Part shown: one piece after another, positions 1 through 53,303 of the stretch
Numbering within the stretch: the stretch's first letter is position 1
Layout: each line of letters starts with the position of its first letter
NCBI GenBank assembly: GCA_964106645.2
Contig: CAXKZF020000136.1
Reading direction: 5' to 3' (one strand)
From: Podarcis pityusensis
Taxonomy: Eukaryota
Length of the DNA stretch: 53,303 nt
The notes under the pieces: generated by a model
Database searches by the model: none
What the model saw: the letters and a program-made list of their open reading frames with translations, nothing else
What the model was told of the DNA's origin: nothing
Made by a program: the position numbers and the translations under genes

Positions 1-351
1 GTTCCAGCCTGTAGCCGCCGAGGCTAAACGGTGCCGTCCCTTCTCGAGGACGTGAATCTAGAGACCTACTCGGATTGAGTCCTGTCACACTCAGGTCAAG
101 GTGTCGCTGGTAACTGCGCTGGCGTTACACCCCCGCAGCTCTGCTGTCGCACGCAGGTTCCTGTGCACGCCGACACGACGGCGCTAACCACGTGGAAGCC
201 CGTCGCACCAAGGGCTCTAAAGAGTGCCTGCCAGACCCGGAGGCGAAAAACTGGGTAGCGTGACCTAAGGGTCGCGTGGGGTGTCACCGTAACCGGGACA
301 CTAACAGATCGTGGATGTGAGCTCTGCTCCGTCCACGATCTTCCCTTTTTT
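1..351 (+). ncRNA. 3' part of the large structured RNA (duplicate of 48907-49257)
   Basis: Overlap copy. Confidence 0.65.
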
Positions 352-458
352 GAGGGGCTTATGCAGCCTTCGGGCCGAACTACTGCGTCAAACCCGAAAC
401 ACTTTTCGCCAGGTGTTGCAGCCGCGATTCTCAGACTTTCTTGTAATAAAAGGCGAAG

Positions 459-1001
459 TTAATCGGTCGCCCCACCAAACTGCTTGTTCTGACGCGTCTT
501 TTTTAGAAACTTCTCGAGTCGGGCCTGAAACACTTCAGGTTTACGCCGCATCTCCTCGATATAACTGATACGGACGCGCTTATACATTTCAGAAAAGGCT
601 TCAAAATGAGCCCAGGTTTCGGGGTTGGCTTGTAGTGCGCTCAAAATGTCTGCCGCGATGTAATCGTCTTCGAGCGAGAGGTCAGGTAGCGTCGCACGTC
701 CCGCCTCGGTCATCTTGCCTTCGTCGATCAGACGGCGGGCACGTATCTTATTTAGTTCGGTCCAGTGGCTGCGCTTACGCCTCGGCGTGTACCGCTTGAC
801 TAAATGGGTGGGGTTGATGCGTTTGCCAAAACCATCGATCCAACCAAAACATAGCGCCTCCTCAACGGCCTCGAGGTACGACACATTAAGCTGCTCTTTG
901 TCCGTCACCAACCAGATTTCGGTTTTTTTGTCGTGATGCTCAAAGAGCCACCGACGCCACGCGGCGCGGTCGGGGGCGTGAAACGTTTCAGTAATGTCCA
1001 T
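459..1001 (-). CDS. YdeI/OmpD-associated family protein
   Basis: WRRWL..H, EAVEEALCFGWIDG, YTPRRKRSHW and C-terminal OmdA-like motifs. Confidence 0.9.
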   Translation of the reverse strand: MDITETFHAPDRAAWRRWLFEHHDKKTEIWLVTDKEQLNVSYLEAVEEALCFGWIDGFGKRINPTHLVKRYTPRRKRSHWTELNKIRARRLIDEGKMTEAGRATLPDLSLEDDYIAADILSALQANPETWAHFEAFSEMYKRVRISYIEEMRRKPEVFQARLEKFLKKTRQNKQFGGATD

Positions 1002-1195
1002 CTTCTACCTCTTGAGGCGTCATACATGCATCAACTTTGCCACTAATTTTAGCGTGCGCAACATGCAAGTTTGATAGATAAAAAGAGAGCGATAGACTTC
1101 AGAGCTTTCGGACGTTTCAGGTGTCCGAGCCCCAAGTCGAAATAACTTGACAACACCCGTTGGCCCAGGTCTACCGCTCCTGTTTGGTCAACGGC

Positions 1196-1633
1196 TCAGG
1201 CGTCGGCCCGAACTTCCAGAATCCAGGTCACGCCGAACTGATCTCTAAGCATTCCGTAGAGCGGCGAGCCCCACGCCGAAGGACCCACGTCCACCGTGAC
1301 GGTTGCGCCGTCCTTGAGCCCGTCCCAGTAGGCCGTCATCTCGTCGGTCGAGTCGCCGTTAAGTGCGACAAAGAGCGCCTTGTCGCCTTGATCGTACGAC
1401 ATGGCAGCCGGGACGTCGTAGCCCATCACATGAAAACCTTTGTCGCTCATAACCTGGCCCCACATGATCTCGTCGGCTTCGTCTTCGGTCGCCATACCGC
1501 CCTCGCTCTGCATGTTGTGTCCGTCCTTATAGGTGAGGAGGGTGATCTCGCCGCCGAAGACGGACTGGTAGAACTCGAGCGCGGTGCGGGCGGTGTGACG
1601 GTAGTTGAGGTGAGTCGTGGTCGTGATAGCCAT
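1196..1633 (-). CDS. VOC/glyoxalase family protein (PhnB-like)
   Basis: ALEFYQSVFGG...WGSPLYGMLRDQFGVTW. Confidence 0.9.
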   Translation of the reverse strand: MAITTTTHLNYRHTARTALEFYQSVFGGEITLLTYKDGHNMQSEGGMATEDEADEIMWGQVMSDKGFHVMGYDVPAAMSYDQGDKALFVALNGDSTDEMTAYWDGLKDGATVTVDVGPSAWGSPLYGMLRDQFGVTWILEVRADA

Positions 1634-2036
1634 TGATGTCTCCTTTATAAATAGGGTGTAGGTAGGGGTACCTTCGGAAGATTTTACGGTTACCGCTGTA
1701 GCCTCCAGCTTGACCTCGTTTTGGGTCTTCTAAAGTCTACGGGCGAGTGTAGGTCAGGGTCAGTCTTGAGTTTGTGTCTTACTTTGCCGTGTTAGAGCTC
1801 GAGACAAGTTCACCCTAGCTGAGGCAAGCCTGTAAGTGGCTACTGAACTCCGGGTGGTCTTGCAGCTGATGTCCTCAGCTTTTCAACAGCTCAATGACCA
1901 TCTCTGTTACACACCGTTTTATGCAGTGGTTGAGCGCGTTGTCTGCATATCCCTATGAGGTGCCACTCATAGATCGTGCCCGTCAAGCTTCGCTCCGTTT
2001 GGGATCTGTCATTTGTACATAGTCACATCGAAACAA

Positions 2037-2058
2037 AAGGGCGAAGCGCTTCGCCCTT
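2037..2058. promoter_or_regulatory. Perfect 22-bp palindrome upstream of the Xre-RES operon (possible operator or hairpin)
   Basis: AAGGGCGAAGC|GCTTCGCCCTT. Confidence 0.45.
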
Positions 2059-2109
2059 ATTTTGTCAATCATTCATCAATAACTCGTCAATTTATTGTAA
2101 AGTAAAGCG

Positions 2110-2481
2110 ATGAGAAGCACTGCGTCCAATCTGATGTTCGGCGTGCCTACCGTTCATGACGAGACGGGCGACATACAAGTGGCTGAACTCGCCAGCCTCT
2201 TCGAGGTCAGCCAGGCACAGCTTGCCCGCATGTCGGGCGTCAGTCGTCAGCTGCTGCACCAGTCTCCTCGCTCAGTCAAGGTGCAGCGTGCCCTGAGACG
2301 ACTGGAGTACCTCTTCGCCCGCACACGTAACTTGACAGGCTCACCCATCAACGCTCGCATCTGGCTCAAGATGGGCCATCCCGACCTCGAGGGCGTCGCA
2401 CCTATTGAGCTGCTCGAAGAGGGACATACCGAGGCCATCGAGGACTTCCTGCTCGCCATCGAGACCGGCTCGCCCCGTTGA
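2110..2481 (+). CDS. Xre/MbcA/ParS-type antitoxin
   Basis: N-terminal HTH plus ARIWL...HPDLEGVAPIELL motif; overlaps the RES gene start. Confidence 0.85.
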   Translation: MRSTASNLMFGVPTVHDETGDIQVAELASLFEVSQAQLARMSGVSRQLLHQSPRSVKVQRALRRLEYLFARTRNLTGSPINARIWLKMGHPDLEGVAPIELLEEGHTEAIEDFLLAIETGSPR

Positions 2482-3033
2482 GCGAACGCCTGGAGCGTCT
2501 CAGCTCGCTCGAGCCCAACGCCCTCGCTGGAACAGCTTTTCGCGCAGTCAACCTGCGTTACCTCGAGACACCACTCTCCGCCGTCGGTCGATCCTGACGG
2601 GCGGGCGCTACAACCCCAAGGGGGCGTTCGAGGTGCTCTACCTGGCTGAGAACCCCATGACCACCCTGCTCGAGGTGCAGTTCGCCGCCAGCAGCGGCGG
2701 GCGCTTCGTGGCTGAGCCCAAAGATCCCTATGTCGTCTTCAGCGTCGCATTTACGCTTCAACACCTAGTCAACCTGCACGATCCCCATAACCTTTCGGAG
2801 CTTGGTCTCTCCCCTGCCGACCTGCAACAGCCTTAGCGCTTGAAGCAGGCACGTGGTGAAAGGGTCCTCACGCACGAGTTAGGTCGGGCACTCTTTGAAC
2901 GTGGGTATGAAGGCCTCAACTACCCCTCGGCCACAGACGGTACGGCGAACCTTGCGGTCTTCCCGACAACTTGAAGCCTGGGAGCCTACTTCAGATCACT
3001 TGGGAAGGCCGTACCCTCGCGAAGGTGCCTTAG
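2478..3033 (+). pseudogene. RES-domain toxin with in-frame amber codon
   Basis: R...GGRYNP...LYLAE...E...YPS..NLAVF motifs; TAG at 2834-2836 in both copies; extra indels in copy 1. Confidence 0.8.
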
Positions 3034-3089
3034 CAACGCATGTCCAAAGAGATACCAGAGCCCTATGTATATAGGGTACGGTGATCGCT

Positions 3090-3285
3090 CTACTTCGCGG
3101 CAAACGTAAGCGCAGCAGCGATGTCCTCAGCTTCCAGGTACGGGTAGTCCCCCTAGGATCTCCTCCTGGCTCGCTCCGGCAGCCAGCAGGTCGAGGATGT
3201 CCTTCACCCGGACTCTTAGACCACGGATGCAAGGTTTCCGCCGCACTGGTCCGGATTCCACAGTGATGCGCTCTAGCTGACTCAT
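3090..3285 (-). pseudogene. Orphan DUF433 antitoxin (frameshifted)
   Basis: RITVNPDQCGG/KPCIRGLRVRVKDILDLLAAG..DYPYLEAEDIAAAL; one base missing at GGAAACC in both copies. Confidence 0.75.
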
Positions 3286-3402
3286 GACCTCACTCCTCAC
3301 GGACCAGTCTGCTCGCTTGATCAATAACAAACCCTAAGGTGTACCCCCGTACCACATCGCGTGCATCCCGTATTTTTTCATGTGCTCGCTGTATCGTCAG
3401 GC

Positions 3403-4116
3403 ATGCGCCTGCACAGCCATTTCGTCGCTCTGTTTGCCCTACTGACCGCCATTGCTACAGCTCAGCAACCCCCACAGCTTGATCCATCCCGAGCCTCGGT
3501 GAACCCTAGAGCCGACGAGATCAGAACGACCGCTTGTACCGTCGAGGAAACGGACGATGACGATGAGCCCAGCAGCCGCGACCTGCCCTCACGCCAGACC
3601 CCCGAATGGCAAGCCGAGTACGCCCGCAGGCAAGCCTACAGCACGCTCTTCCCAGAGTTCCTGGCAGTCGTGCCCCTCGAGCGGGATGACGAGGTGCTCA
3701 TGCCGGTCGAGGGCGTCACCATGAGCCAGGTGGCAGACACCTGGGGTGCAGCTAGAAGCGAAGGCCGGTCGCACGAAGGTACCGACATCTTCGCTGCTGA
3801 GGGCACCCCGATTTATTCCGCCACGACCGGGTACGTGCAGCGCATCGGCTCTAACCCGGTCGGCGGCAACATCGTGACCGTCATCGGTGGAGGCAGTGTG
3901 CGTTATTACTACGCCCATCTCTCGGGCTTCTCCGAGGCGCTCGAGGAGGGGCAGTACGTGACGCCCGAAACGCTCCTGGGCTACGTGGGCAACACCGGCA
4001 ACGCCATAACCACCCCGCCGCACCTGCATTTCGGCGTTTACGCTGGTGAGTCGTACCTGACGTGCGACTGGGACGCCGAGAACCCTTACTCCCTCATCGT
4101 CGATAGAGTCTGGTGA
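3403..4116 (+). CDS. Secreted M23 family metallopeptidase
   Basis: Signal peptide; HEGTDIFA, YYYAHL, PPHLHFG motifs (start could be 3361). Confidence 0.92.
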   Translation: MRLHSHFVALFALLTAIATAQQPPQLDPSRASVNPRADEIRTTACTVEETDDDDEPSSRDLPSRQTPEWQAEYARRQAYSTLFPEFLAVVPLERDDEVLMPVEGVTMSQVADTWGAARSEGRSHEGTDIFAAEGTPIYSATTGYVQRIGSNPVGGNIVTVIGGGSVRYYYAHLSGFSEALEEGQYVTPETLLGYVGNTGNAITTPPHLHFGVYAGESYLTCDWDAENPYSLIVDRVW

Positions 4117-4159
4117 AGAACGTCATACCTGTGACGGCTGAAGTCGTTGCTGGCAGGCT

Positions 4160-4880
4160 TTACTCAGCCAGGGTGCGCCCGAAGAAGCTGACCATCTGGT
4201 CGTAAGCGTCGTTTGCCGCGAAGGTTTCCTGCAGCTCACCGTCTACCAGGAAGCTGTGTGGCTCGCCCTGGTAGACGCTTAGCTCGAAAAACTTGCCCGC
4301 CTCGTCGAGCACCGTCGCGTACTCGTAGATGTCGGCAATCGGGCTCGCTTCGTCGGCCGTCCCGTGGAAGATGAGCATGGGCGCGTCGAGCTGCGAAACG
4401 ATCGCCTCGTCGATGGGCCGGTCTCCCTCATCACCCCGGTTGGGAAAGCCATACCAGGCTACGCCCGCCGCGAACTCGGTGATGGTCGGCAGGTAGTACA
4501 TGGTGTAATAACCGCCAATGCAAAAGCCCGTCAGGCCGATGCGCTCGGGGTCCACGTCGCCACGCTCACCCAGAAAAGCCAAGCTATCGCGCAGGAGGGC
4601 GTCCATAACCTCCAGGGGCGGTTCCTCCTCGTAGGTTTGCCACTCGAGCGCCAGCGTTACAAAGCCATCCGCGGCTAGCTTGTCGGCGACCTCTTCGTAG
4701 CCGGGTTGTTGCCCTCTGATCGAGTGCAAGAGGACAACGGCGGGCTTCTGACCTTCGCCATCGGGCACCGTCAGGTAGGCGGGGTAGCTCTGCTCCTGGC
4801 TGGTGACTTCGACACGTTCGGCGCTCTGGGCGAACACAAGACCAAAAGACAAAACGACCAAACGATAGTAAAACGCGCAT
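4160..4880 (-). CDS. Dienelactone hydrolase family protein (signal-peptide region probably frameshifted)
   Basis: GFCIGG nucleophile elbow, HGTAD, GEPHSF; RBS+ATG at 4880 is out of frame with ORF 4160-4861. Confidence 0.85.
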
Positions 4881-16505: not shown

Positions 16506-17450
16506 GTGCCTAGTGACCCGCCACAGTCATCCGACCAAACTCAGCAAATCCTTGCTCTCACCGACAGCCTAACCGCCTTGCAGGTCGTTCGCATCACACC
16601 CCTGGCCGAAGGCGAAGGTACAGCTGCCTACAGCGCCTACACGCGTGACGGGCGGACGCTCATCGTACGCGTGCAGAAGCGCGGGGTCTCCGACTTCAAC
16701 CAGGAGGGGTGGGCAATGGCGCGCTGTCGCGAGGCGGGCGTCCCCGTCCCCGAGGTTCACAGCATCTACGACGCTGCGACCACCGGGTTGGGCGCAGTGA
16801 TGGTCATGGACCAAGCCCGGGGACGACCATTAAGCGACGTCCTGCCGTCATTGAGTCCCGACGACGTCAAGAGGGTGTTCGTCAACGTCGGTGCGCTCCT
16901 GGGCCGCCTCCATCAGACATCTGCTCCGGCCTTCGGCTGGCTACGACGCGAGGGAAATGAACCAGGCGCGAGCGACTGGGTCGCCTACGCTCGAGAACTC
17001 CTCGGTGCGCGCCAGAAGGACGCCCCGATGTTAGAGGCAGCAGGATTAAACCCCAACGAGGTTGGTGAACTGCTCGAGGCAGTCTCAAGCATGGCGGACT
17101 TGCCCTATAGGGACCCGGTGCTTTGTCACGGTGATGTAGGTGCCGACCACCTCTTCGTCAACGACGCCCTCGACATTGTGGACCTCATCGACTTCGGCCT
17201 GGCCCAAGGGAGTGCCCCAGCGCTGGACGTGGCGGTCTTGCAGATGTTCCACCCGGAGGTCGAGCGTGCCTGGCTCGCGGAGAGGTACGGCTCGGGGCTT
17301 CTGGAACGTGAGGGCTTCGGGCGCGAGGTTCTGCTGCACCAGGTGAACGCGGCGATGAGCTTCCTGGGCGAGCAGATGCGGCGGGGGGAGCACTGTTATA
17401 AGGACATTGCTGTTCAGGGTTTGCGCTCGTGGCTCATCCAGTTGACGTAA
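16506..17450 (+). CDS. APH-family phosphotransferase
   Basis: GVPVPEV, LCHGDVGADHL, LIDFG. Confidence 0.88.
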   Translation: MPSDPPQSSDQTQQILALTDSLTALQVVRITPLAEGEGTAAYSAYTRDGRTLIVRVQKRGVSDFNQEGWAMARCREAGVPVPEVHSIYDAATTGLGAVMVMDQARGRPLSDVLPSLSPDDVKRVFVNVGALLGRLHQTSAPAFGWLRREGNEPGASDWVAYARELLGARQKDAPMLEAAGLNPNEVGELLEAVSSMADLPYRDPVLCHGDVGADHLFVNDALDIVDLIDFGLAQGSAPALDVAVLQMFHPEVERAWLAERYGSGLLEREGFGREVLLHQVNAAMSFLGEQMRRGEHCYKDIAVQGLRSWLIQLT

Positions 17451-17520
17451 GGGGGTGAAGACTAGCTTCATGAATCCGTGCCCTCTGTCTAGCTGAGAGG
17501 TTGAGAACAAGCACTATGCT

Positions 17521-19600
17521 GTGAGGATGAACTCAGCAGATTATAAGCGCTGGTCCCTGATTCTGTTCGTTATCCTCTCCTTTCTCACAGGTACAGCACA
17601 AGCTTCGCCCCAACTTTACGGCTATGGCAGCCTGACCGACCTGCAGTACAGTCCCGACGGTCGCCTACTGGTGACGGGTACTAATCGCGGCTTTATTCTT
17701 TGGAACGCCCGCTCCCGGCAGATCATCAGGCGAGTCGATCTATCAGGCGCACTCGAGAGCTTTTCTAAGCTTGGCCTCGGGACGGCTGTAGCGTTTAGTC
17801 CCGATGGACGCCAGCTCGCAGCCGCAGCGGGTACAACGCTGCGACTCTGGGACGTTCGCACCTTCAAGTTAATCCGTAGCTACGAGGCCCAACACTTTAG
17901 GGGCAGCAGGCCACCTTCGCTACTTTCGCTAAGCTTCAGTCCATCGGGGGACCGTCTAGCTGCAGGTGCTACCGATGGTCGTGTCCGTCTTTGGGCTATA
18001 AGAAACAAGCAGCCTACCGCTGTTTTTCACACTCGCCCAGCCAACAGTTACGCCTACGACGTCAGCTTCAGCGGCGACGGACGACTCTTGGCTGCCGTAT
18101 CAGGGCTCGGACCCACCGGCATGGTCTCTCGCGTAGAAGCGGGCTCTGTTCGCGTCTGGAATCTTCAAACCCGAACGCTCGTGTTCGGCCTCGAGCCGCC
18201 CAGCGACGTTAAGGCAGTTGCGCTCAGTCCCAATGGCAAGCTGCTGGCCGTCGGCTCCTTTAGCAGCAGGCAGCTTCCGCCCCTCCAAGATGCGAAAAAT
18301 ACTCGTACCTACCGAACCCGTCCTCATACCTACGGGGCTCGACTCTATTCGTTACCCACCGGGAAACTACTGACCAACTATCTGGGGCTTCGCAACGAGG
18401 TCCGTTCGCTTGCCTTTAGCCCCGACGGGACGAGGCTAGCCGGTTCGGCCACTACGGACCGGGCGGTGGTGTGGCGTGTGGCTGACGGTCGTATCGTGGC
18501 GGAACCTACGGGTATGTACGGGGGAATGCAAAACAGCTCTCTGTCGTGGCACCCAAACGGCCAGGTACTGGCCTATGGAACTGATATGGGCGTGCGGCTA
18601 TGGAACATACCGCACAACCGATTCTTGGCACGATTACAGGGTTTTTGCCCCGAATGCGAGGCTGCTTGACATCAGCTCGGACGGGAAGACACTTGCCGCC
18701 GGAAGCTACTCGGGGTTACGTATCTGGTCTATTGCGAACGGTCGCCTGTTACAAGAGATCGGCGACGACGACTTCAAGGCTGCGCGCTTTTCCTCTGATG
18801 GGGAAGGGCTCTTCACTGTTAGGGAGGAGAATTATCAGGGAGAACCCTCCGCTAAAGGAAGGGTCTTTATTGAGCATTACGCCGTACGTGAGGGCAAACG
18901 TCTCGAGTCAGTTCAGACGCCTATCCAAGGGGCACGAGCTGTAACGTTTAGCCGTGACCGCCGTTTTGTGGCTATCATGCGAAACGGTTTTACTGATCCT
19001 ACCAACGAAGGGATCGCCGACCTCTTTGCTCTCCCCTCAGGACGCCATATAGCGGCCCTCGAGCACGTTAGCCGTGTGCCAGGCCTCGATTTTGGTCGGC
19101 CAGCCATGCTGGACACATTAGCGTTTAGTCAGGACGGGTCGAAGCTTGCAGTAAGTACATCTGAGGGTGTGATCTGGCTCTGGAACGTATCTTCGGGTCG
19201 TCTCGTAAAGCGGCTACTTGTCTACAAAACAGCTACAGATGATTACGGGACTGGAGCAATCGCCTGGAGTCCTGATAGAACACGACTTCTGGTTGGTGCA
19301 CAAATTTACGACGTAGCTAGCGGCAACTTGGTTCAGACCCTCCATAAGCAGGAAGTGCTGAGTGTCTACAGTATGGACTGGTTAGCGGACGGGCAGCGTG
19401 TCCTTGTCTCCCGTGCAGGTGGGTATGCCAACAAGTTGACCATCTGGCAGGTCGACGATGCCGTCCATCCCAAGCTTATTGCCATGATCCCCTTAAAGTA
19501 TTCGGTCTATCGAGCGTTGTTCGGTCCGGGCAAGACTATCTTTTTGGAGCATTGGCTTGAAGGATTAATTAGCCGTCACGTCATTCCGGGCGAGCCCTAA
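17521..19600 (+). CDS. Secreted WD40-repeat protein split by a frameshift (ORFs 17521-18669 and 18476-19600)
   Basis: Signal peptide; repeated AFSPDG..LA..VRLWD units in both frames; break near the GGGGTTTTTG/CCCC runs at ~18639-18651. Confidence 0.8.
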
Positions 19601-20286: not shown

Positions 20287-21009
20287 TCAGGCTCGACTTG
20301 CCAGCACACCGCGACTTCCCAAGCCTCGAGTGCTCTCCTGAGGACGAATCGGGTCTATCGCAGGTACGGTCTCGTCTGCCGGGATCAGCGTCGCCAGGTC
20401 GAAGGCTGAAACGTCAACCCGCGCTTCATCCCAGTCGATAAGGGCGATGTGGTCATCCCGAGTTACCAACACGTTGTTCGGGTTTATGTCGCCATGAACG
20501 ACAGACTGCGACTGTCCTGAAAGGGTCGCCCATGCCTCACGGCAAACGCTTATCAAGTCGGCTGGCATCAGCTCGAGGTCGACATCACCGCCCTGCGTCC
20601 GGCTTAGCAGTTCTTGACTGGAAGCGAACCCGGGCCGCTGGGGCCAATGCCGCGTAGCGCCATGAAGTCGCCTCATCGCCTGCTTAGCTGCGGGAAAGTG
20701 GGTGGCGGCAAGGGGTGCACCGTCGATCCACTGTTCTACCGTTACGCCGCCTTCGACAAGGCGACCTTGGAGGCTGGGGACGAACCTGGGCATGACGAGG
20801 CCCGCGGTTTCGACCCTAGGGTAAAGATCTTGAAGCCAGTCGATGCCTGAGGCACTACGACGTGTTGACTTGGCCACCAGCAGTTCATTACCGCGTTCGA
20901 CGAGGAGGACAGTATTGCGGTAGCCGCCCTCGAGCTGCCGCAAGAAGCGCAGGTCACCCCAAGCAGGTAGCACACTGATTACTTGGTCTGGAGTCATCAC
21001 GATCTCCAA
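20287..21009 (-). CDS. APH-family phosphotransferase (C-terminus probably frameshifted)
   Basis: VVHGDINPNNVL, LIDWDEA. Confidence 0.8.
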   Translation of the reverse strand: MEIVMTPDQVISVLPAWGDLRFLRQLEGGYRNTVLLVERGNELLVAKSTRRSASGIDWLQDLYPRVETAGLVMPRFVPSLQGRLVEGGVTVEQWIDGAPLAATHFPAAKQAMRRLHGATRHWPQRPGFASSQELLSRTQGGDVDLELMPADLISVCREAWATLSGQSQSVVHGDINPNNVLVTRDDHIALIDWDEARVDVSAFDLATLIPADETVPAIDPIRPQESTRGLGSRGVLASRA

Positions 21010-22543: not shown

Positions 22544-23545
22544 GTGTCTCGCCTTAAAAGCATCCTGAAGGACAGCCTCAGAGCGTCGCTAGCGCCGTCG
22601 CTAAGCGCGGCCGTCATACTCGCCGGGGAGCTACACGAGGTGGAAGCCATCGGTGTACGAAAACGAGGAGAGAACCTTCCAGTTCAACCAACGGACAAGT
22701 ATCATCTCGGGTCTTGCGGGCAAGCAATGACCGCCGTATTGGCAGCCAGACTAGTTGATTGGGGCAAGCTTTCGTGGAGTACGACTGTCATCGATGTCTT
22801 TGGCGACCCATCTATACACGCCGATTATGCGGAGGTCACGCTGAAGCAGCTGCTCAATCACGGGTCTAGGTGCCCCGCTTCGGTGAGCGAAGAATTGTGG
22901 CAGAGTTTGGGCCATCGGTCCGCGAGTGAGCAACGCCTCGCCCTAGTCACTGACGTGCTGACCAAACCACCCCACCCCCTCACTGATGAACCTGGCTACA
23001 GCGACGTGAATTACCTCTTAGTGGGGGCCATGATGGAGAAAGCTACAGGTGAAAGTTTTGAAGACCTCCTTCAGGTAGAACTCTTTATTCCGCTCGGCAT
23101 GACCTCAGCAGGGCTTGGTGCGCCAGTCAAGACTGCCACGATCAGCCAACCGTTGGGTCATAACCCAGATCCCGTCGATCCTCTGATCTACGGGGATGAC
23201 CCGAAAGCCTTCACCCCCGTCGGCAGCGTCCACTGCTCCATGAAGGACTGGGCCACCTTCGCGCACCTTTATCTCTCAGCTAAACCCGAACGGTTCGTCT
23301 CAGAGACAAGTCTCGGTTACCTGCGAGGAGAGGCGCCGGGTTGGGTGGCTAACAACAGCCATCCAGATTTTGGACGTGTTCTCTGGCTTGGAGCGGGCAA
23401 TGGCATGTTTTACGCCGCAATCAGCTTGTACCTCGAGACGAAGTCCGCGGTCATGGTGGCAACCAACGTCGGGGGACAAGCCGGTGAAGAGGCGTGCCTG
23501 ACGGCCTCACTTCAGATCGAGCAAAGCTACCTTAAACAGACGTAG
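22544..23545 (+). CDS. Serine hydrolase / beta-lactamase-like protein
   Basis: LGSCGQAMTA, TLKQLLNH, YSDVNYLLVG, LGMTS; SxxK lysine replaced by Q. Confidence 0.8.
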   Translation: MSRLKSILKDSLRASLAPSLSAAVILAGELHEVEAIGVRKRGENLPVQPTDKYHLGSCGQAMTAVLAARLVDWGKLSWSTTVIDVFGDPSIHADYAEVTLKQLLNHGSRCPASVSEELWQSLGHRSASEQRLALVTDVLTKPPHPLTDEPGYSDVNYLLVGAMMEKATGESFEDLLQVELFIPLGMTSAGLGAPVKTATISQPLGHNPDPVDPLIYGDDPKAFTPVGSVHCSMKDWATFAHLYLSAKPERFVSETSLGYLRGEAPGWVANNSHPDFGRVLWLGAGNGMFYAAISLYLETKSAVMVATNVGGQAGEEACLTASLQIEQSYLKQT

Positions 23546-46070: not shown

Positions 46071-46290
46071 ACTCCTTCGTCACTTCTTTCCAGCCGATTC
46101 TACCTTAAATATTAAGGTGTTTCAACACACTTAGGTCTCACAAGTTCACTTACCTAACCCGGTAACAAGATGGTGCATCACCTCACCTGGGGCTTTACTG
46201 CATAAACACAGAAGCCCAATGGCGACGTGCAACCACCCTTTGAACGGCAAAGATCTTCATAGCGCAGCCTGTGATGTATATAATGTAGGC

Positions 46291-46575
46291 ATGATCCGGA
46301 AACAGCTCTATCTTGAAGAAGCTCAGGACCAGGCGCTCAAAGTGCGAGCCAAGGAATTAGGTATCTCTGAGGCTGAGATCGTCAGGCGGGCGCTTGACGC
46401 AGCCTTACATCCTAAAGGCAGCGCCCAACTCATCGCGCCCCGTAGGGCAGCACTCACCCGGCTCGTCCGTAACGCCAAACGCCTCTCCGAAGACCATCAC
46501 TTTCCTGAGGGCTACCGCTTCAAGCGCGAGGAACTCTACGACGAGCGAGAGGACCGCTGGCCCAAACGCTCCTGA
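46291..46575 (+). CDS. CopG/RHH antitoxin
   Basis: MIRKQLYLEEAQDQALKVRAKELGISEAEIVRRALD. Confidence 0.88.
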   Translation: MIRKQLYLEEAQDQALKVRAKELGISEAEIVRRALDAALHPKGSAQLIAPRRAALTRLVRNAKRLSEDHHFPEGYRFKREELYDEREDRWPKRS

Positions 46576-47018
46576 TGCCCACCTATCTGCTCGACACGAA
46601 TCTCCTGCTCTATGCTCACGACCAACACAAACTTCACAAGCAAGGACGTGCCCTCGAGTTGCTCGAACGCCTAGGAGATGGCCTCAGTGCTGCGCTCAGC
46701 ACCCAGAACTTGGCCGAATTCGCCAACGTCGCCCTGAAGCGGCTCAAGCCACCCCTCTCTCCTGCTGAGGTCACCGAACAGTTGGAGTTACTCGAGCAGA
46801 CCTTCGTCGTCTACCCGTTGACTGCTGCGGTCGTCCGGGAAGCTGTTCGTGGTGTCGGAGTGCATAGTCTGTCTTACTACGATGCACAGGTCTGGGCGGT
46901 GGCGAAACTCAACCAGATCCCGGTTGTCCTGAGCGAAGACTTCAATACAGGCGCGACGCTCGAGGGAGTGCTATTTCTAAACCCACTCGAGCCAAGCTTC
47001 GACCTCGCTACGTTGTAA
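46575..47018 (+). CDS. vapC: PIN-domain toxin
   Basis: LLDTNLLLYA, QNLAEF, SYYDAQVWA, LSEDF. Confidence 0.92.
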   Translation: MPTYLLDTNLLLYAHDQHKLHKQGRALELLERLGDGLSAALSTQNLAEFANVALKRLKPPLSPAEVTEQLELLEQTFVVYPLTAAVVREAVRGVGVHSLSYYDAQVWAVAKLNQIPVVLSEDFNTGATLEGVLFLNPLEPSFDLATL

Positions 47019-47094
47019 TGCCCCGTGCGAGCATTAAGCGCTAGCGCGACGTGCCGTCGGGTTGACAGAAACAAAATGCGACCCACCCCGATCA

Positions 47095-47799
47095 TTAATC
47101 CCGAGACCCATGCTTAGCGTCCCCGAGGTACTGTCCCAACGTCATCGGCGGGTCGTCATGAAACACCACGGGCCGCATCACCGGGTACGACTCAGGCCAG
47201 TTCGGCTGCCGCTGAAAAAAGTGAAGCCTAGGTGCTGCCCGCGATTCCCCCCAGGCATGCTGCGCCCGCCGCACGAGATCCTTGATGTCCTCTCTTACTC
47301 CGTTGAACATCGGCATCTTCGAGAGGCCCTCGAGCAGCACATTCATCTGCACTGTGTTCCGTGACTTTGCGGCAGCCAGCAACCGCGCCTCGTACTCCTG
47401 CCGGTATTGCCGCCTGAGCTTCCAGGTCCAGCGCTTGTAACGGTTCTCCGTCAGAACGTAATGCCGGAAGGTCAACCGCGTCTGGTTCACCCTCGCGTCC
47501 ACCAATGCCTCACCCTGGATAGGCGCACTCGAGAACAGCAACCAGTGCATCAAGTGGGTATCCTCGAGGCTCGGGTGGACTACCAGGAAGGTCGCTGGGA
47601 ACCCCGCTTTGCGCAGTACATGACGCTCCTGATCGTTCAGCAGGACATGGTACCGAGCGTGCATTTTATCTACAAATGCTGCAATCTTATTCAGCGGCAG
47701 CTGACCCTGAACATACAGCGGACACTTCTGCACCCGCCGCTGCACCGACTGCATCATTGCCGCCTGAGACCGAAAAAGCGGATAATCAAGACCCACCAT
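47095..47799 (-). CDS. Basic hypothetical protein divergent from the large RNA
   Basis: 234-aa Arg/Lys-rich ORF; minus-strand TAGAAT (47809-47814) just before the ATG. Confidence 0.75.
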   Translation of the reverse strand: MVGLDYPLFRSQAAMMQSVQRRVQKCPLYVQGQLPLNKIAAFVDKMHARYHVLLNDQERHVLRKAGFPATFLVVHPSLEDTHLMHWLLFSSAPIQGEALVDARVNQTRLTFRHYVLTENRYKRWTWKLRRQYRQEYEARLLAAAKSRNTVQMNVLLEGLSKMPMFNGVREDIKDLVRRAQHAWGESRAAPRLHFFQRQPNWPESYPVMRPVVFHDDPPMTLGQYLGDAKHGSRD

Positions 47800-47849
47800 G
47801 ATTGCGTTATTCTAGCAAAGCATATTAAAGCCGTATTATAGAATGTTCC

Positions 47850-49257
47850 TCTGCACGAGCTTTTTGTACGCTGTCGATAACCAGTCTGTGGGCGGTGGGT
47901 GGGAGCCTCGAGTTCGTACGTGATGCTTGGTATATCCCGCATAAGGGCGTAAAGTTCCAGGCAGGTGAGTCCACATCACTTACCGAATGAACCTGAGACT
48001 AGCCATCTCAGGAAGCCACGCTGGAGCTGCGTGCCTTCACAAATGGGGGCTGGCGCGGCTGCACCAGGGGCTGCGAGGGGAAGTGCCTCGCTTCTACCTA
48101 ATCTTCACCTGAAGGTTGGGCGACACGGACACGGGTACCAGGTGACCTGGGATGCCCTGCCGTACCAGAACACCGCAGGGGCAGCTCTCGGGGCTTCGCA
48201 AGAGTTGAACCTGCGCCCGACAGGTGGGCTGGCATGCACGACCGCGAGGCGTGCGCGTGAACGATGCGGACCCGGGTGGTCCCCAGGACGCAGACGTTCA
48301 CCGGTACTCCCCGGGGCAACCTGAGGAGATCGCTGGATAGCTCAAGCCGCACCCCAGGCGGCTGTCGGGTCTGCACAACCTTCGGGTTGTGGCGAGCACG
48401 TGCCCTTAAGGCCTACTTCTTGTGAGGGGGTAGGCGTCGGGCCTAGAGGATGAGGCGCTGGTAATCCGGGAGTTCGGAACATTTGCCCGGGGAGAAGCTG
48501 CAACGCGAGACCACAACGGTCAGGCGTCCTCATCCTGGGAAAGGGCGGGCGACTCGTTCACCAACAGTGACAGGGTCAGTACGGCTAACGTGGGAAGCTC
48601 TCCCCAAAACCATCAGGGCTGGGAGAGTGGGAGACTGAGCCAGTAGACGTCAAGGGTGCCGCGAGCGACCGTAAGGTCTAAACCGAACGCGAGCGACACA
48701 CCGAAGCCCGCAAGGGGTCAAGTCGAAAGCTCAGGGCGTGACATTTTCGGCTGCGATGTGGACTAGCCTCGCCGGACGCGAGGACACCAACCGTCACGTA
48801 TGGAAGTGCGTGAACGCGTGACCTGGAGAGATGCCTGGCAGCATCCCGAAAGGTCGCATCACCAGAGACGAACGAGTCTGGTCGCCCGTTTGTCTCGCGC
48901 GTGAACGTTCCAGCCTGTAGCCGCCGAGGCTAAACGGTGCCGTCCCTTCTCGAGGACGTGAATCTAGAGACCTACTCGGATTGAGTCCTGTCACACTCAG
49001 GTCAAGGTGTCGCTGGTAACTGCGCTGGCGTTACACCCCCGCAGCTCTGCTGTCGCACGCAGGTTCCTGTGCACGCCGACACGACGGCGCTAACCACGTG
49101 GAAGCCCGTCGCACCAAGGGCTCTAAAGAGTGCCTGCCAGACCCGGAGGCGAAAAACTGGGTAGCGTGACCTAAGGGTCGCGTGGGGTGTCACCGTAACC
49201 GGGACACTAACAGATCGTGGATGTGAGCTCTGCTCCGTCCACGATCTTCCCTTTTTT
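47850..49257 (+). ncRNA. Large structured RNA; candidate circularly permuted (CP) group II ribozyme with D5-D6 at the 5' end
   Basis: No credible ORF. D5-like hairpin 48024-48061 with AGC triad and 2-nt bulge; D6-like hairpin 48066-48099 with bulged A48096, ending CUACCUAAU; UUCG/GNRA tetraloops, G-U pairs that work only on +, long-range helices; terminal hairpin plus U-tract. Confidence 0.75.
49212..49257 (+). terminator. Intrinsic terminator-like hairpin ending the large RNA (duplicate at 306-351)
   Basis: AGATCGTGGATG...CGTCCACGATCT stem followed by TCCCTTTTTT. Confidence 0.6.
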
Positions 49258-49364
49258 GAGGGGCTTATGCAGCCTTCGGGCCGAACTACTGCGTCAAACC
49301 CGAAACACTTTTCGCCAGGTGTTGCAGCCGCGATTCTCAGACTTTCTTGTAATAAAAGGCGAAG

Positions 49365-49907
49365 TTAATCGGTCGCCCCACCAAACTGCTTGTTCTGACG
49401 CGTCTTTTTTAGAAACTTCTCGAGTCGGGCCTGAAACACTTCAGGTTTACGCCGCATCTCCTCGATATAACTGATACGGACGCGCTTATACATTTCAGAA
49501 AAGGCTTCAAAATGAGCCCAGGTTTCGGGGTTGGCTTGTAGTGCGCTCAAAATGTCTGCCGCGATGTAATCGTCTTCGAGCGAGAGGTCAGGTAGCGTCG
49601 CACGTCCCGCCTCGGTCATCTTGCCTTCGTCGATCAGACGGCGGGCACGTATCTTATTTAGTTCGGTCCAGTGGCTGCGCTTACGCCTCGGCGTGTACCG
49701 CTTGACTAAATGGGTGGGGTTGATGCGTTTGCCAAAACCATCGATCCAACCAAAACATAGCGCCTCCTCAACGGCCTCGAGGTACGACACATTAAGCTGC
49801 TCTTTGTCCGTCACCAACCAGATTTCGGTTTTTTTGTCGTGATGCTCAAAGAGCCACCGACGCCACGCGGCGCGGTCGGGGGCGTGAAACGTTTCAGTAA
49901 TGTCCAT
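49365..49907 (-). CDS. YdeI/OmpD-associated protein (overlap duplicate)
   Basis: Identical to 459-1001. Confidence 0.85.
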   Translation of the reverse strand: MDITETFHAPDRAAWRRWLFEHHDKKTEIWLVTDKEQLNVSYLEAVEEALCFGWIDGFGKRINPTHLVKRYTPRRKRSHWTELNKIRARRLIDEGKMTEAGRATLPDLSLEDDYIAADILSALQANPETWAHFEAFSEMYKRVRISYIEEMRRKPEVFQARLEKFLKKTRQNKQFGGATD

Positions 49908-50101
49908 CTTCTACCTCTTGAGGCGTCATACATGCATCAACTTTGCCACTAATTTTAGCGTGCGCAACATGCAAGTTTGATAGATAAAAAGAGAGCGATA
50001 GACTTCAGAGCTTTCGGACGTTTCAGGTGTCCGAGCCCCAAGTCGAAATAACTTGACAACACCCGTTGGCCCAGGTCTACCGCTCCTGTTTGGTCAACGG
50101 C

Positions 50102-50539
50102 TCAGGCGTCGGCCCGAACTTCCAGAATCCAGGTCACGCCGAACTGATCTCTAAGCATTCCGTAGAGCGGCGAGCCCCACGCCGAAGGACCCACGTCCAC
50201 CGTGACGGTTGCGCCGTCCTTGAGCCCGTCCCAGTAGGCCGTCATCTCGTCGGTCGAGTCGCCGTTAAGTGCGACAAAGAGCGCCTTGTCGCCTTGATCG
50301 TACGACATGGCAGCCGGGACGTCGTAGCCCATCACATGAAAACCTTTGTCGCTCATAACCTGGCCCCACATGATCTCGTCGGCTTCGTCTTCGGTCGCCA
50401 TACCGCCCTCGCTCTGCATGTTGTGTCCGTCCTTATAGGTGAGGAGGGTGATCTCGCCGCCGAAGACGGACTGGTAGAACTCGAGCGCGGTGCGGGCGGT
50501 GTGACGGTAGTTGAGGTGAGTCGTGGTCGTGATAGCCAT
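50102..50539 (-). CDS. VOC family protein (overlap duplicate)
   Basis: Identical to 1196-1633. Confidence 0.85.
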   Translation of the reverse strand: MAITTTTHLNYRHTARTALEFYQSVFGGEITLLTYKDGHNMQSEGGMATEDEADEIMWGQVMSDKGFHVMGYDVPAAMSYDQGDKALFVALNGDSTDEMTAYWDGLKDGATVTVDVGPSAWGSPLYGMLRDQFGVTWILEVRADA

Positions 50540-51015
50540 TGATGTCTCCTTTATAAATAGGGTGTAGGTAGGGGTACCTTCGGAAGATTTTACGGTTACC
50601 GCTGTAGCCTCCAGCTTGACCTCGTTTTGGGTCTTCTAAAGTCTACGGGCGAGTGTAGGTCAGGGTCAGTCTTGAGTTTGTGTCTTACTTTGCCGTGTTA
50701 GAGCTCGAGACAAGTTCACCCTAGCTGAGGCAAGCCTGTAAGTGGCTACTGAACTCCGGGTGGTCTTGCAGCTGATGTCCTCAGCTTTTCAACAGCTCAA
50801 TGACCATCTCTGTTACACACCGTTTTATGCAGTGGTTGAGCGCGTTGTCTGCATATCCCTATGAGGTGCCACTCATAGATCGTGCCCGTCAAGCTTCGCT
50901 CCGTTTGGGATCTGTCATTTGTACATAGTCACATCGAAACAAAAGGGCGAAGCGCTTCGCCCTTATTTTGTCAATCATTCATCAATAACTCGTCAATTTA
51001 TTGTAAAGTAAAGCG

Positions 51016-51387
51016 ATGAGAAGCACTGCGTCCAATCTGATGTTCGGCGTGCCTACCGTTCATGACGAGACGGGCGACATACAAGTGGCTGAACTCGCCA
51101 GCCTCTTCGAGGTCAGCCAGGCACAGCTTGCCCGCATGTCGGGCGTCAGTCGTCAGCTGCTGCACCAGTCTCCTCGCTCAGTCAAGGTGCAGCGTGCCCT
51201 GAGACGACTGGAGTACCTCTTCGCCCGCACACGTAACTTGACAGGCTCACCCATCAACGCTCGCATCTGGCTCAAGATGGGCCATCCCGACCTCGAGGGC
51301 GTCGCACCTATTGAGCTGCTCGAAGAGGGACATACCGAGGCCATCGAGGACTTCCTGCTCGCCATCGAGACCGGCTCGCCCCGTTGA
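51016..51387 (+). CDS. Xre/MbcA antitoxin (overlap duplicate)
   Basis: Identical to 2110-2481. Confidence 0.85.
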   Translation: MRSTASNLMFGVPTVHDETGDIQVAELASLFEVSQAQLARMSGVSRQLLHQSPRSVKVQRALRRLEYLFARTRNLTGSPINARIWLKMGHPDLEGVAPIELLEEGHTEAIEDFLLAIETGSPR

Positions 51388-51941
51388 GCGAACGCCTGGA
51401 GCGTCTCAGCTCGCTCGAGCCCAACGCCCTCGCTGGAACAGCTTTTCGCGCAGTCAACCTGCGTTACCTCGAGACACCACTCTCCGCCGTCGGGTCGATC
51501 CTGACGGGCGGGCGCTACAACCCCAAGGGGGCGTTCGAGGTGCTCTACCTGGCTGAGAACCCCATGACCACCCTGCTCGAGGTGCAGTTCGCCGCCAGCA
51601 GCGGCGGGCGCTTCGTGGCTGAGCCCAAAGATCCCTATGTCGTCTTCAGCGTCGCATTTACGCTTCAACACCTAGTCAACCTGCACGATCCCCATAACCT
51701 TTCGGAGCTTGGTCTCTCCCCTGCCGACCTGCAACAGCCTTAGCGCTTGAAGCAGGCACGTGGTGAAAGGGTCCTCACGCACGAGTTAGGTCGGGCACTC
51801 TTTGAACGTGGGTATGAAGGCCTCAACTACCCCTCGGCCACAGACGGTACGGCGAACCTTGCGGTCTTCCCCGACAACTTGAAGCCTGGGAGCCTACTTC
51901 AGATCACTTGGGAAGGCCGTACCCTCGCGAAGGTGCCTTAG
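51384..51941 (+). pseudogene. RES toxin with one in-frame TAG (overlap duplicate, cleaner copy)
   Basis: ORFs 51384-51743 and 51747-51941 are in the same frame. Confidence 0.8.
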
Positions 51942-52308
51942 CAACGCATGTCCAAAGAGATACCAGAGCCCTATGTATATAGGGTACGGTGATCGCTCTA
52001 CTTCGCGGCAAACGTAAGCGCAGCAGCGATGTCCTCAGCTTCCAGGTACGGGTAGTCCCCTAGGATCTCCTCCTGGCTCGCTCCGGCAGCCAGCAGGTCG
52101 AGGATGTCCTTCACCCGGACTCTTAGACCACGGATGCAAGGTTTCCGCCGCACTGGTCCGGATTCACAGTGATGCGCTCTAGCTGACTCATGACCTCACT
52201 CCTCACGGACCAGTCTGCTCGCTTGATCAATAACAAACCCTAAGGTGTACCCCCGTACCACATCGCGTGCATCCCGTATTTTTTCATGTGCTCGCTGTAT
52301 CGTCAGGC

Positions 52309-53022
52309 ATGCGCCTGCACAGCCATTTCGTCGCTCTGTTTGCCCTACTGACCGCCATTGCTACAGCTCAGCAACCCCCACAGCTTGATCCATCCCGAGC
52401 CTCGGTGAACCCTAGAGCCGACGAGATCAGAACGACCGCTTGTACCGTCGAGGAAACGGACGATGACGATGAGCCCAGCAGCCGCGACCTGCCCTCACGC
52501 CAGACCCCCGAATGGCAAGCCGAGTACGCCCGCAGGCAAGCCTACAGCACGCTCTTCCCAGAGTTCCTGGCAGTCGTGCCCCTCGAGCGGGATGACGAGG
52601 TGCTCATGCCGGTCGAGGGCGTCACCATGAGCCAGGTGGCAGACACCTGGGGTGCAGCTAGAAGCGAAGGCCGGTCGCACGAAGGTACCGACATCTTCGC
52701 TGCTGAGGGCACCCCGATTTATTCCGCCACGACCGGGTACGTGCAGCGCATCGGCTCTAACCCGGTCGGCGGCAACATCGTGACCGTCATCGGTGGAGGC
52801 AGTGTGCGTTATTACTACGCCCATCTCTCGGGCTTCTCCGAGGCGCTCGAGGAGGGGCAGTACGTGACGCCCGAAACGCTCCTGGGCTACGTGGGCAACA
52901 CCGGCAACGCCATAACCACCCCGCCGCACCTGCATTTCGGCGTTTACGCTGGTGAGTCGTACCTGACGTGCGACTGGGACGCCGAGAACCCTTACTCCCT
53001 CATCGTCGATAGAGTCTGGTGA
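52309..53022 (+). CDS. M23 peptidase (overlap duplicate)
   Basis: Identical to the first copy. Confidence 0.85.
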   Translation: MRLHSHFVALFALLTAIATAQQPPQLDPSRASVNPRADEIRTTACTVEETDDDDEPSSRDLPSRQTPEWQAEYARRQAYSTLFPEFLAVVPLERDDEVLMPVEGVTMSQVADTWGAARSEGRSHEGTDIFAAEGTPIYSATTGYVQRIGSNPVGGNIVTVIGGGSVRYYYAHLSGFSEALEEGQYVTPETLLGYVGNTGNAITTPPHLHFGVYAGESYLTCDWDAENPYSLIVDRVW

Positions 53023-53303
53023 AGAACGTCATACCTGTGACGGCTGAAGTCGTTGCTGGCAGGCTTTACTCAGCCAGGGTGCGCCCGAAGAAGCTGACCA
53101 TCTGGTCGTAAGCGTCGTTTGCCGCGAAGGTTTCCTGCAGCTCACCGTCTACCAGGAAGCTGTGTGGCTCGCCCTGGTAGACGCTTAGCTCGAAAAACTT
53201 GCCCGCCTCGTCGAGCACCGTCGCGTACTCGTAGATGTCGGCAATCGGGCTCGCTTCGTCGGCCGTCCCGTGGAAGATGAGCATGGGCGCGTCGAGCTGC
53301 GAA

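Follow-up and report, generated by a model that had tools for sequence, protein, structure and literature searches.

Can a plasmid region of about 1.4 kb that lacks any credible open reading frame (ORF) encode a catalytic RNA, and if so, which of its parts belong to the ribozyme? This question is raised by positions 47850-49257 of a 53,303-nt stretch of DNA (the window) taken from contig CAXKZF020000136.1 of the Podarcis pityusensis assembly GCA_964106645.2. A preliminary description, made from the letters alone, had proposed a giant circularly permuted (CP) group II ribozyme without a reverse transcriptase (RT). Our analysis makes it highly probable that the + strand of 47850-49257 encodes a single non-coding RNA whose body is a CP group II ribozyme, which may be served by a maturase-like cofactor, AcpG, encoded in trans. 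The ribozyme class itself is already known, having been described in 2021 and followed by cryo-electron microscopy structures; the window adds a member and a Deinococcus-like subclade. The class was thus correctly named from raw sequence, and the parts that deserve follow-up are a conserved 3′ tail and the maturase-like fold predicted for AcpG.

The Rfam search by which the preliminary description proposed to check its assignment returned nothing relevant for the whole window at the gathering score and no group II match for 47700-49400 at E ≤ 10, because the class has no Rfam model. A blastn and megablast search of PLSDB found no close plasmid, the sole match being a 45-nt patch (91% identical) in two small Azotobacter plasmids. 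This patch is located in an unannotated 1.2-kb gap which, as judged by eye, is collinear with the window and shows compensatory changes. An 18-mer from the patch was found at 28 places in representative genomes, ~21 of which are true homologues by nhmmer, and the taxa concerned are Azotobacter, Marinobacter, Paraburkholderia, Neisseriaceae, Fluviicoccus, Moraxellaceae, Kordiimonadaceae, Rivibacter, and Acinetobacter. A hidden Markov model (HMM) built from 19 homologues matches positions 131-751 of pPNAP05, which is the experimentally validated Pna ribozyme (E=1e-50), with further matches, in Deinococcus sp. QL22 and D. wulumuqiensis, to the gaps upstream of acpG; when rebuilt without the window, it matches window positions 48019-48652 (E=8.7e-38). 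Considering that a direct nhmmer comparison of Pna with the window gave no match at E ≤ 10, the homology link runs via the profile. A conserved 19-mer had no match in viral contigs.

The CP group II class (formerly T-large; Roth, Weinberg, Vanderschuren, Murdock & Breaker 2021) consists of RNAs of ~900 nt found in Thermus, Firmicutes, and Proteobacteria, on chromosomes as well as on plasmids (PMC8637638). Their domain 5 (D5; other domains are abbreviated likewise) has AGC and a UN bulge with five base pairs between them, D6 has a branch A and an internal loop, the variable linker has NU at one edge and GGGCG at the other, and the associated protein AcpG (~260 amino acids (aa)) is often encoded immediately upstream in divergent orientation (PMC8637638). 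In the window, an AGC-starting hairpin with a two-base 3′ bulge, a bulged-A hairpin, a variable hairpin, and an invariant GGGCGAC follow each other in this order, and the identification is based on their agreement with the published description (PMC8637638). Pna, Taq, and 19 others are collinear with the region, in which D5 and D6 lie 5′ of D1, D2, and D3. As far as sequence can tell, the proposed CP group II identity, the D5-D6 position at the 5′ end, and the stand-alone + strand RNA are all borne out.

Unannotated CP group II ribozymes were also noticed in 1.2-kb 'empty' gaps of Azotobacter plasmids (L001, 2700-3560; L002; L008) and in Acinetobacter contigs (L003, L007, L010, L013, L020, L022, L028, and L030). 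In the Acinetobacter copies, D1 carries insertions and the linkers are long (40-70 nt) and AT-rich.

Two alignments define the anatomy of the ribozyme. Alignment A2 (MAFFT) contains 21 members including Pna and T. aquaticus, and the close-relative analysis used seven sequences with RNAalifold and pair counts. The close relatives (contigs among L049-L059) have an AcpG that is 60-92% identical and DNA that aligns with the window over all of 47802-49270. The domain order in the ribozyme body is P2, D5, D6, linker, D1, D2, D3, and 3′ D4, and the individual features are as follows.

47969-47977/48755-48763, + strand: closing helix (split-D4 stem), 9 bp, paired in 7/7 sequences except for one cell.
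47992-48012, + strand: P2 hairpin (D4p2) with loop CUAGCCA, 7 bp, five pairs with double changes in close relatives.
48017-48022, + strand: segment between P2 and D5, pairing with 48735-48740 (6 bp, one double change).
48025-48060, + strand: D5, with the AGC triad (48025-27), a lower helix of 8 bp, the UG bulge (48051-52), and an upper helix of 5 bp (A2).
48066-48099, + strand: D6, with an internal loop and the bulged branch-point A48096 (A2).
48103-48117, + strand: linker, predicted 15-nt circular exon with a 4-bp stem-loop; the 3′ splice site lies behind AAU (ending at 48102) and the 5′ splice site in front of GGGCG (starting at 48118).
48118-48591, + strand: D1, collinear with Pna and 20 other members, many double-compensated helices.
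48597-48628, + strand: D2 (short form), after the family-wide CUAACGUGGGAA motif, with helix 48597-604/48621-28.
48629-48635, + strand: J2/3, purine-rich GGGAGAC, kept family-wide.
48635-48734, + strand: D3, with E-loop-like AGUAG / GAAAG at its base, motifs conserved family-wide.
48735-48800, + strand: 3′ part of split D4 (48735-40, 48755-63, and hairpin 48767-83), from close-relative covariation.

Covariation among homologues, named beforehand as a check, was found. In A2, 93% of the D5 cells and 92% of the D6 cells are paired, and double changes affect 9/13 and 9/11 of their pairs, respectively. The G and C of AGC are invariant, the bulge is conserved, and the branch A is present in 21/21 rows. 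None of 500 shuffles scored as high as observed, and sliding the 3′ partners by 1-3 columns reduced whole-structure pairing from 80.8% to 40-48%. In the closing helix, three pairs are changed on both sides (AU/GC, UA/GC, and CG/AU/UA). This helix and 48017-22/48735-40 join the 5′ and 3′ parts of the ribozyme, as the split D4 likewise does in Gdi-1, whose omega-omega' contact is analogous to 48017-22/48735-40 (PMC13717195). The closing helix therefore delimits a closed ribozyme of ~795 nt (47969-48763, + strand). The GCCA-type loop of P2 is kept throughout the family. A candidate for the kissing-loop pseudoknot that the P2 and D2 loops form in the class was read by eye: GGCUG, located at the 3′ end of the D2 loop, is complementary to the CUAGCCA loop over 4-5 bp, and Deinococcus sp. 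QL22 has a 6-bp P2/D2 complement (CUCGCC/GGCGAG). D1 includes a conserved GGCAA-loop hairpin (48302-32) and the helices 48392-48407/48541-57 and 48442-59/48523-39, and the closing helix of D3 (48635-40/48729-34) has three double changes, with AGUAG and GAAAG on its flanks. The four tetraloop hairpins picked out in the preliminary description are all at the positions given there, each within a helix that shows compensatory changes (48302-15/48320-32, 48374-80/48385-91, 48668-70/48675-77, and 48707-09/48714-16). The core (47990-48800) folds better than its shuffles on the + strand (z -3.24, 0/20 as good), the value for the - strand being z -1.44. Family membership and domain anatomy are directly supported.

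Could the region instead be protein-coding, or represent a new large RNA class unrelated to group II introns? The lack of an Rfam match and the presence of open frames of 45-120 codons might be taken in favor of these possibilities. However, such frames occur in any GC-rich DNA, a conserved frame and codon periodicity are both absent, and the region is clearly homologous to validated CP group II ribozymes, so that both can practically be dismissed. Both strands of 47850-49257 have only short ORFs, the variable columns in the tail of the close relatives are distributed 10/10/11 by codon position (no 3-base periodicity), and no conserved coding frame was seen in homologues; the initial impression of a region without a credible ORF is confirmed.

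The splice-site motifs are directly supported as well. When applied to Pna, the NU/GGGCG boundary rule gives 32 nt, which equals the published circle, and the circles tested so far are 32-86 nt (PMC8637638). Linkers are 13-70 nt among 27 members, with unrelated sequences. In the reaction that we infer for the window ribozyme, the freed 3′-OH of U48117 would attack the 3′ splice site following U48102, the 15-nt linker would leave as a circle, and a branched D5-D6/D1-D4 RNA would remain. It might be objected that the element is a decayed, catalytically dead CP group II relic that has been retained for another reason or for none. A complementarity search for EBS1-IBS1 pairing (exon- and intron-binding sites) gave a candidate EBS at 48478-84, close to the GGAAYMUCG loop (a recurrent site), whose pairing has a mismatch in the window and L049, the 15-nt linker is below all tested circles, and processed forms were undetected in vivo even for Pna (PMC8637638). 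We nevertheless consider a dead relic quite improbable. All catalytic landmarks (AGC, bulge, branch A, GGGCG, J2/3, and D3 E-loop) are intact and covarying and are retained in seven relatives with a core identity of 66-92%, and several independent members likewise have linkers of 13-16 nt. If such linkers are excised by active CP group II ribozymes, the resulting RNA circles would be among the smallest in nature. A perfect 8-nt EBS complement at 48378-85 was set aside as probably due to chance, since it lies inside a hairpin with a covarying stem.

The word "giant" does not fit the element. Outside the closed ribozyme, the surplus consists of a leader of ~120 nt and a 3′ extension of ~490 nt that ends in a conserved terminator, and the catalytic body is not enlarged. 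The class size given in the preliminary description (~0.7-0.8 kb) was also too small, as the class averages ~900 nt and the published Thermus members are 1.0-1.14 kb (PMC8637638). With these sizes, and with a conserved stretch of ~1.25 kb shared by Thermus plasmids, a length of 1.4 kb lies close to the range of the class. The extra length may, judging from its conservation, hold undescribed domains. The features at the two ends are listed below.

47839-47844, + strand: -10-like box TAGAAT, kept with its flanks in L057 and L049.
47850-47968, + strand: 5′ leader (~120 nt), 62-69% identity overall, with the 3′ half (~47932-47968) strongly conserved in close relatives.
48801-49211, + strand: conserved 3′ tail restricted to the subclade, with local hairpins in series (alignment of close relatives).
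49212-49257, + strand: intrinsic terminator-like hairpin and U tract, kept in L050, L051, L059, and L049, one pair being compensated (AU<->UA).

Both end signals had been noticed earlier, and both turned out to be conserved, the TAGAAT box in the two relatives that reach that far. A consensus promoter scan did not call this box. Three Logan contig sets from RNA libraries (X1-X3) contain relatives of 90-99% identity over 47978-49149, including 48621-49149 with much of the tail and leaving the flanking genes uncovered. No joints are present in these contigs, and such contigs cannot prove transcription, ends, or back-splicing. A fourth set (X4) is near-identical DNA, probably from the source.

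The conservation of the tail is observed directly and resembles that of the catalytic core: tail/core identities are 82.2/80.5% in L050, 78.4/66.5% in L051, 79.3/81.4% in L057, and 81.6/79.7% in L058. The 3′ extension is thus a candidate accessory or protein-binding domain outside the published consensus, and the tail may be either an extended 3′ D4 or a separate element. The latter possibility is a serious one, although we give it somewhat less than an even chance: the tail might, for instance, be another regulatory RNA, bind a protein, or act as a site for plasmid maintenance, sharing the transcript or the DNA with the ribozyme and being unconnected with its function. The ribozyme is already closed by 47969-77/48755-63, the tail is missing in every other family member compared, and folding of the last 412 nt is no better than that of shuffles (z -1.28 on the + strand and -0.46 on the - strand), so that the expected excess of folding holds for the core, on the + strand only, and fails for the tail. 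In addition, the block ~48990-49150 is nearly invariant with little covariation, as for a sequence-specific site, and the pPNAP05 ribozyme is positioned near the plasmid origin according to Roth et al. (PMC8637638). On the other hand, there is no promoter or terminator between ribozyme and tail, the sole terminator-like hairpin coming after the tail, and the tail always accompanies this ribozyme subclade irrespective of the downstream gene. Nine double-compensated pairs in local hairpins (two of these hairpins with YUGGY loops) and the gain or loss of a whole 28-nt hairpin between relatives are also like those of a structured RNA. Moreover, in Gdi-1 an unmodelled 3′ D4 extension touches the exon (PMC13717195). 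The tail had no match at E ≤ 10 in an nhmmer search of 46 loci including the Deinococcus sp. QL22 and D. wulumuqiensis plasmids, and a metagenome scan with a 20-mer from the tail found no match.

How the tail is arranged relative to D1 differs from what had been drawn initially. Six long-range helices had been proposed, one of which stands: 48447-59/48523-36 has 16 bp, with four pairs changed on both sides. Three others (48391-99/49130-38, 48402-07/49116-21, and 48543-59/48870-91) are contradicted, as they compete with the D1 helix 48392-48407/48541-48557, which has four double-compensated pairs. For example, 48405 forms C-G with 48543 in the window and G-C in relatives, and the proposed partner 49118 would give G-G; part of 48870-96 also makes a local hairpin with its own compensations. 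The remaining two (48365-73/49138-46 and 48434-42/49104-12) are unsupported, showing only invariant positions or one-sided (G-U type) changes or being partly broken. The cofolding gain of D1 with the tail (-14.7 kcal/mol) is equalled by 0.9% of random plasmid windows and is not significant after scanning the transcript. Pairing between leader and tail (RNAduplex) was dropped because it is inconsistent among relatives.

Two further observations concern the tail. The YUGGY-loop hairpins (48820-48856 and 48863-48896, with CUGGCA and CUGGUC; UUGGUC in relatives) resemble UGGC loops that kiss the P1/P2 GCCA loops in other members, and the D2/D3 loops of the window are without UGGC. Three copies of the octamer CGTGAACG are present in the transcript (48258, 48810, and 48900), and the second and third, which lie in the tail, are largely conserved, with one substitution in some relatives.

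Does the ribozyme have a protein partner? Two genes precede it on the opposite strand.

47095-47799, - strand: acpG homologue (234 aa), divergent from the ribozyme, identified by tblastn, with a predicted RT palm+thumb-like fold.
46877-47095, - strand: small ORF (72 aa) from the ORF list, abutting the acpG stop, without a Pfam match.

By tblastn, the former matches the TTHC007 locus of pTT8, a pPNAP05 gene, and 19 Thermus and 2 Deinococcus plasmids, with 26-30% identity over 77-97% of the query. A gene of 77-83 aa occupies the position of the small ORF in L050, L057, L058, and L059 (position compared only). In the searchable literature, AcpG is mentioned only in the 2021 paper, in which no homology to a known protein class was reported (PMC8637638), and we found no match for it in Pfam (E ≤ 10), NCBIfam, or PDB sequences. 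A Pfam scan of 39 window ORFs found no RT domain, so that the earlier statement that the plasmid lacks an RT holds at the Pfam level; however, the predicted fold of AcpG is nearest to group II intron RT/maturases.

A profile search for AcpG yielded 429 clusters, and an AlphaFold (AF2) model from 72 diverse members reached a predicted local distance difference test (pLDDT) score of 95.4 and a predicted template modelling (pTM) score of 0.89. An earlier model from 10 close sequences had pLDDT 64 and was uninformative in Foldseek. The nearest non-self structures in ESM Atlas are four group II intron RT/maturase clusters (RVT_1 + GIIM), with TM scores by query of 0.65-0.68 across 202-208 of the 234 AcpG residues, and Foldseek with the better model placed 8t2r_D, 8fli_B, and 8t2s_D at ranks 2, 4, and 6 with weak E-values. 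On the RT side, the matches begin at about residue 100-150, which implies that the N-terminal fingers are absent from AcpG. Among the 72 members, G32, K45, G66, W126, P163, G167, and R169 are near-invariant, YxDD is not conserved, and E97 and D101 are the sole conserved acidic positions. The fold similarity is directly supported, and a diverged maturase relative is a good lead from the model.

We infer that AcpG would act as a trans-encoded maturase-like cofactor that aids folding or reaction of the ribozyme in the cell, and it would probably bind the split D4, i.e., the conserved leader and the 3′ tail. In an evolutionary scenario that we regard as evenly balanced between right and wrong, AcpG is a trimmed and diverged descendant of a group II RT/maturase that kept palm and thumb without the fingers, probably gave up polymerase activity, and moved from D4 to a gene of its own; CP group II ribozymes would then be ribonucleoproteins (RNPs) that dock AcpG on the split D4, which in this Deinococcus-like subclade would have grown to a leader of ~120 nt and a tail of ~490 nt. 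A maturase-like cofactor would give the story of an intron protein that was retained after permutation.

It is also conceivable that the likeness to RT/maturases is convergent or a modelling artefact and that AcpG has an unrelated role, such as in maintaining or replicating the plasmid, its tie to the ribozyme being one of genetic linkage alone. No sequence-level signal to RTs was found in the databases named above, the scores against PDB structures are middling, and acpG is found in copG-acpG-orf operons of small Thermus plasmids and beside toxin-antitoxin genes. But group II intron RT/maturases lead the non-self matches in three independent searches with the pLDDT-95 model, covering ~90% of the protein, and the first, weak model pointed in the same direction. 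With regard to replication, pTthSNM1-1e carries a separate REP gene (PMC12724237), and the ParA gene of the window is ~10 kb away from the acpG-ribozyme module, across the junction of the circular plasmid. An unrelated role is therefore unlikely in our view, and a maturase-like cofactor remains the preferred reading. AcpG as the plasmid Rep had been raised by a 4.7-kb Thermus plasmid for which only copG-acpG-orf are listed. This candidate was dropped because that gene table omits genes crossing the record start (long ORFs reach that end), an experimentally used REP exists separately on a sister plasmid (PMC12724237), and pTT8 still replicates with its ribozyme deleted (PMC8637638).

Regarding the neighborhood of these modules, CP group II RNA was found in two Thermus thermophilus plasmids from Senami hot spring, pTthSNM1-1f (L047, 2001-3275) and pTthSNM1-1e (L048, 4313-5487), where it is divergent from the copG-acpG-orf operon, whose genes are the only three listed for the 4.7-kb plasmid; pTthSNM1-1e is one source of shuttle-vector replicons (PMC12724237). 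Toxin-antitoxin pairs (ribbon-helix-helix (RHH) + PIN, or an 83-aa ORF + PemK) adjoin the acpG-ribozyme module in the window (46219-47018, + strand) and in several relatives (L049, 3669-4396; L057, 2374-2968; L058, 2150-2738).

From what kind of replicon does the element come? The source contig is a circular replicon of 48,906 bp that was read beyond its junction. The record start falls inside the ribozyme region because position 48907 repeats position 1. The window has genes for a type IV coupling protein (best matches in Deinococcus plasmids, ~33% identity), ParA, VapBC-like proteins, and transposases. These genes, together with the distant Deinococcus affinity, identify the contig as a bacterial plasmid of conjugative type within an animal assembly, and, judging by gene content, the contig probably derives from a contaminant or an associated bacterium. 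In an ungapped comparison of the two copies (1-4397 and 48907-53303), the first 2,587 nt agree and 498 differing positions follow, and later ORFs hold the same offset in both copies; a local variant, an indel, or assembly heterogeneity could account for the difference. Among the cargo genes at 16506-19600, 20287-21009, and 22544-23545 are those for two APH-type phosphotransferases, a pair of adjacent WD40 beta-propeller proteins, and one serine beta-lactamase-family protein.

How does the element compare with known systems? With the CP group II ribozymes (Pna/pPNAP05, Cte-1, Gdi-1, and Tth; PMC8637638), it shares the domain order, the D5 AGC and UN bulge, the D6 branch A, the NU/GGGCG splice motifs, a variable linker with a stem-loop, the P2 hairpin, J2/3, the D3 E-loop, the split D4, the plasmid location, and the divergent acpG. 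Unlike the published members, its plasmid relatives are in Deinococcus, a genus outside the 2021 species list, its linker is very short (15 nt), its D2 is short, and its conserved leader and ~490-nt 3′ tail, likewise conserved, were seen in the immediate subclade alone. Canonical bacterial group II introns (RF00029 for D5-D6, and group-II-D1D4) resemble it in having homologous domains and, presumably, in reacting by the same two-step transesterification, whereas the window ribozyme is permuted, without an ORF in D4, and without mobility. Its D5 is also non-canonical (UG bulge, 8+5 bp), and thus the Rfam models do not match at E ≤ 10. CP group II ribozymes yield a circle together with a branched RNA, in contrast to the ligated exons and lariat of canonical introns. 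As to AcpG, the predicted fold superposes over 150-208 residues on the palm and thumb/X of RT/maturases (RVT_1 + GIIM; 6me0_C, 7uim_D, and 8t2r_D), the comparison set also including G2L4, DRT9, DRT2, diversity-generating retroelement (DGR) and retron RTs, and the Prp8 RT-like domain. Like RT/maturases, AcpG is genetically tied to a group II-type ribozyme. Unlike them, it is about half the size (210-290 aa), without fingers, detectable sequence similarity, or a conserved YxDD, and its gene lies outside the ribozyme on the opposite strand.

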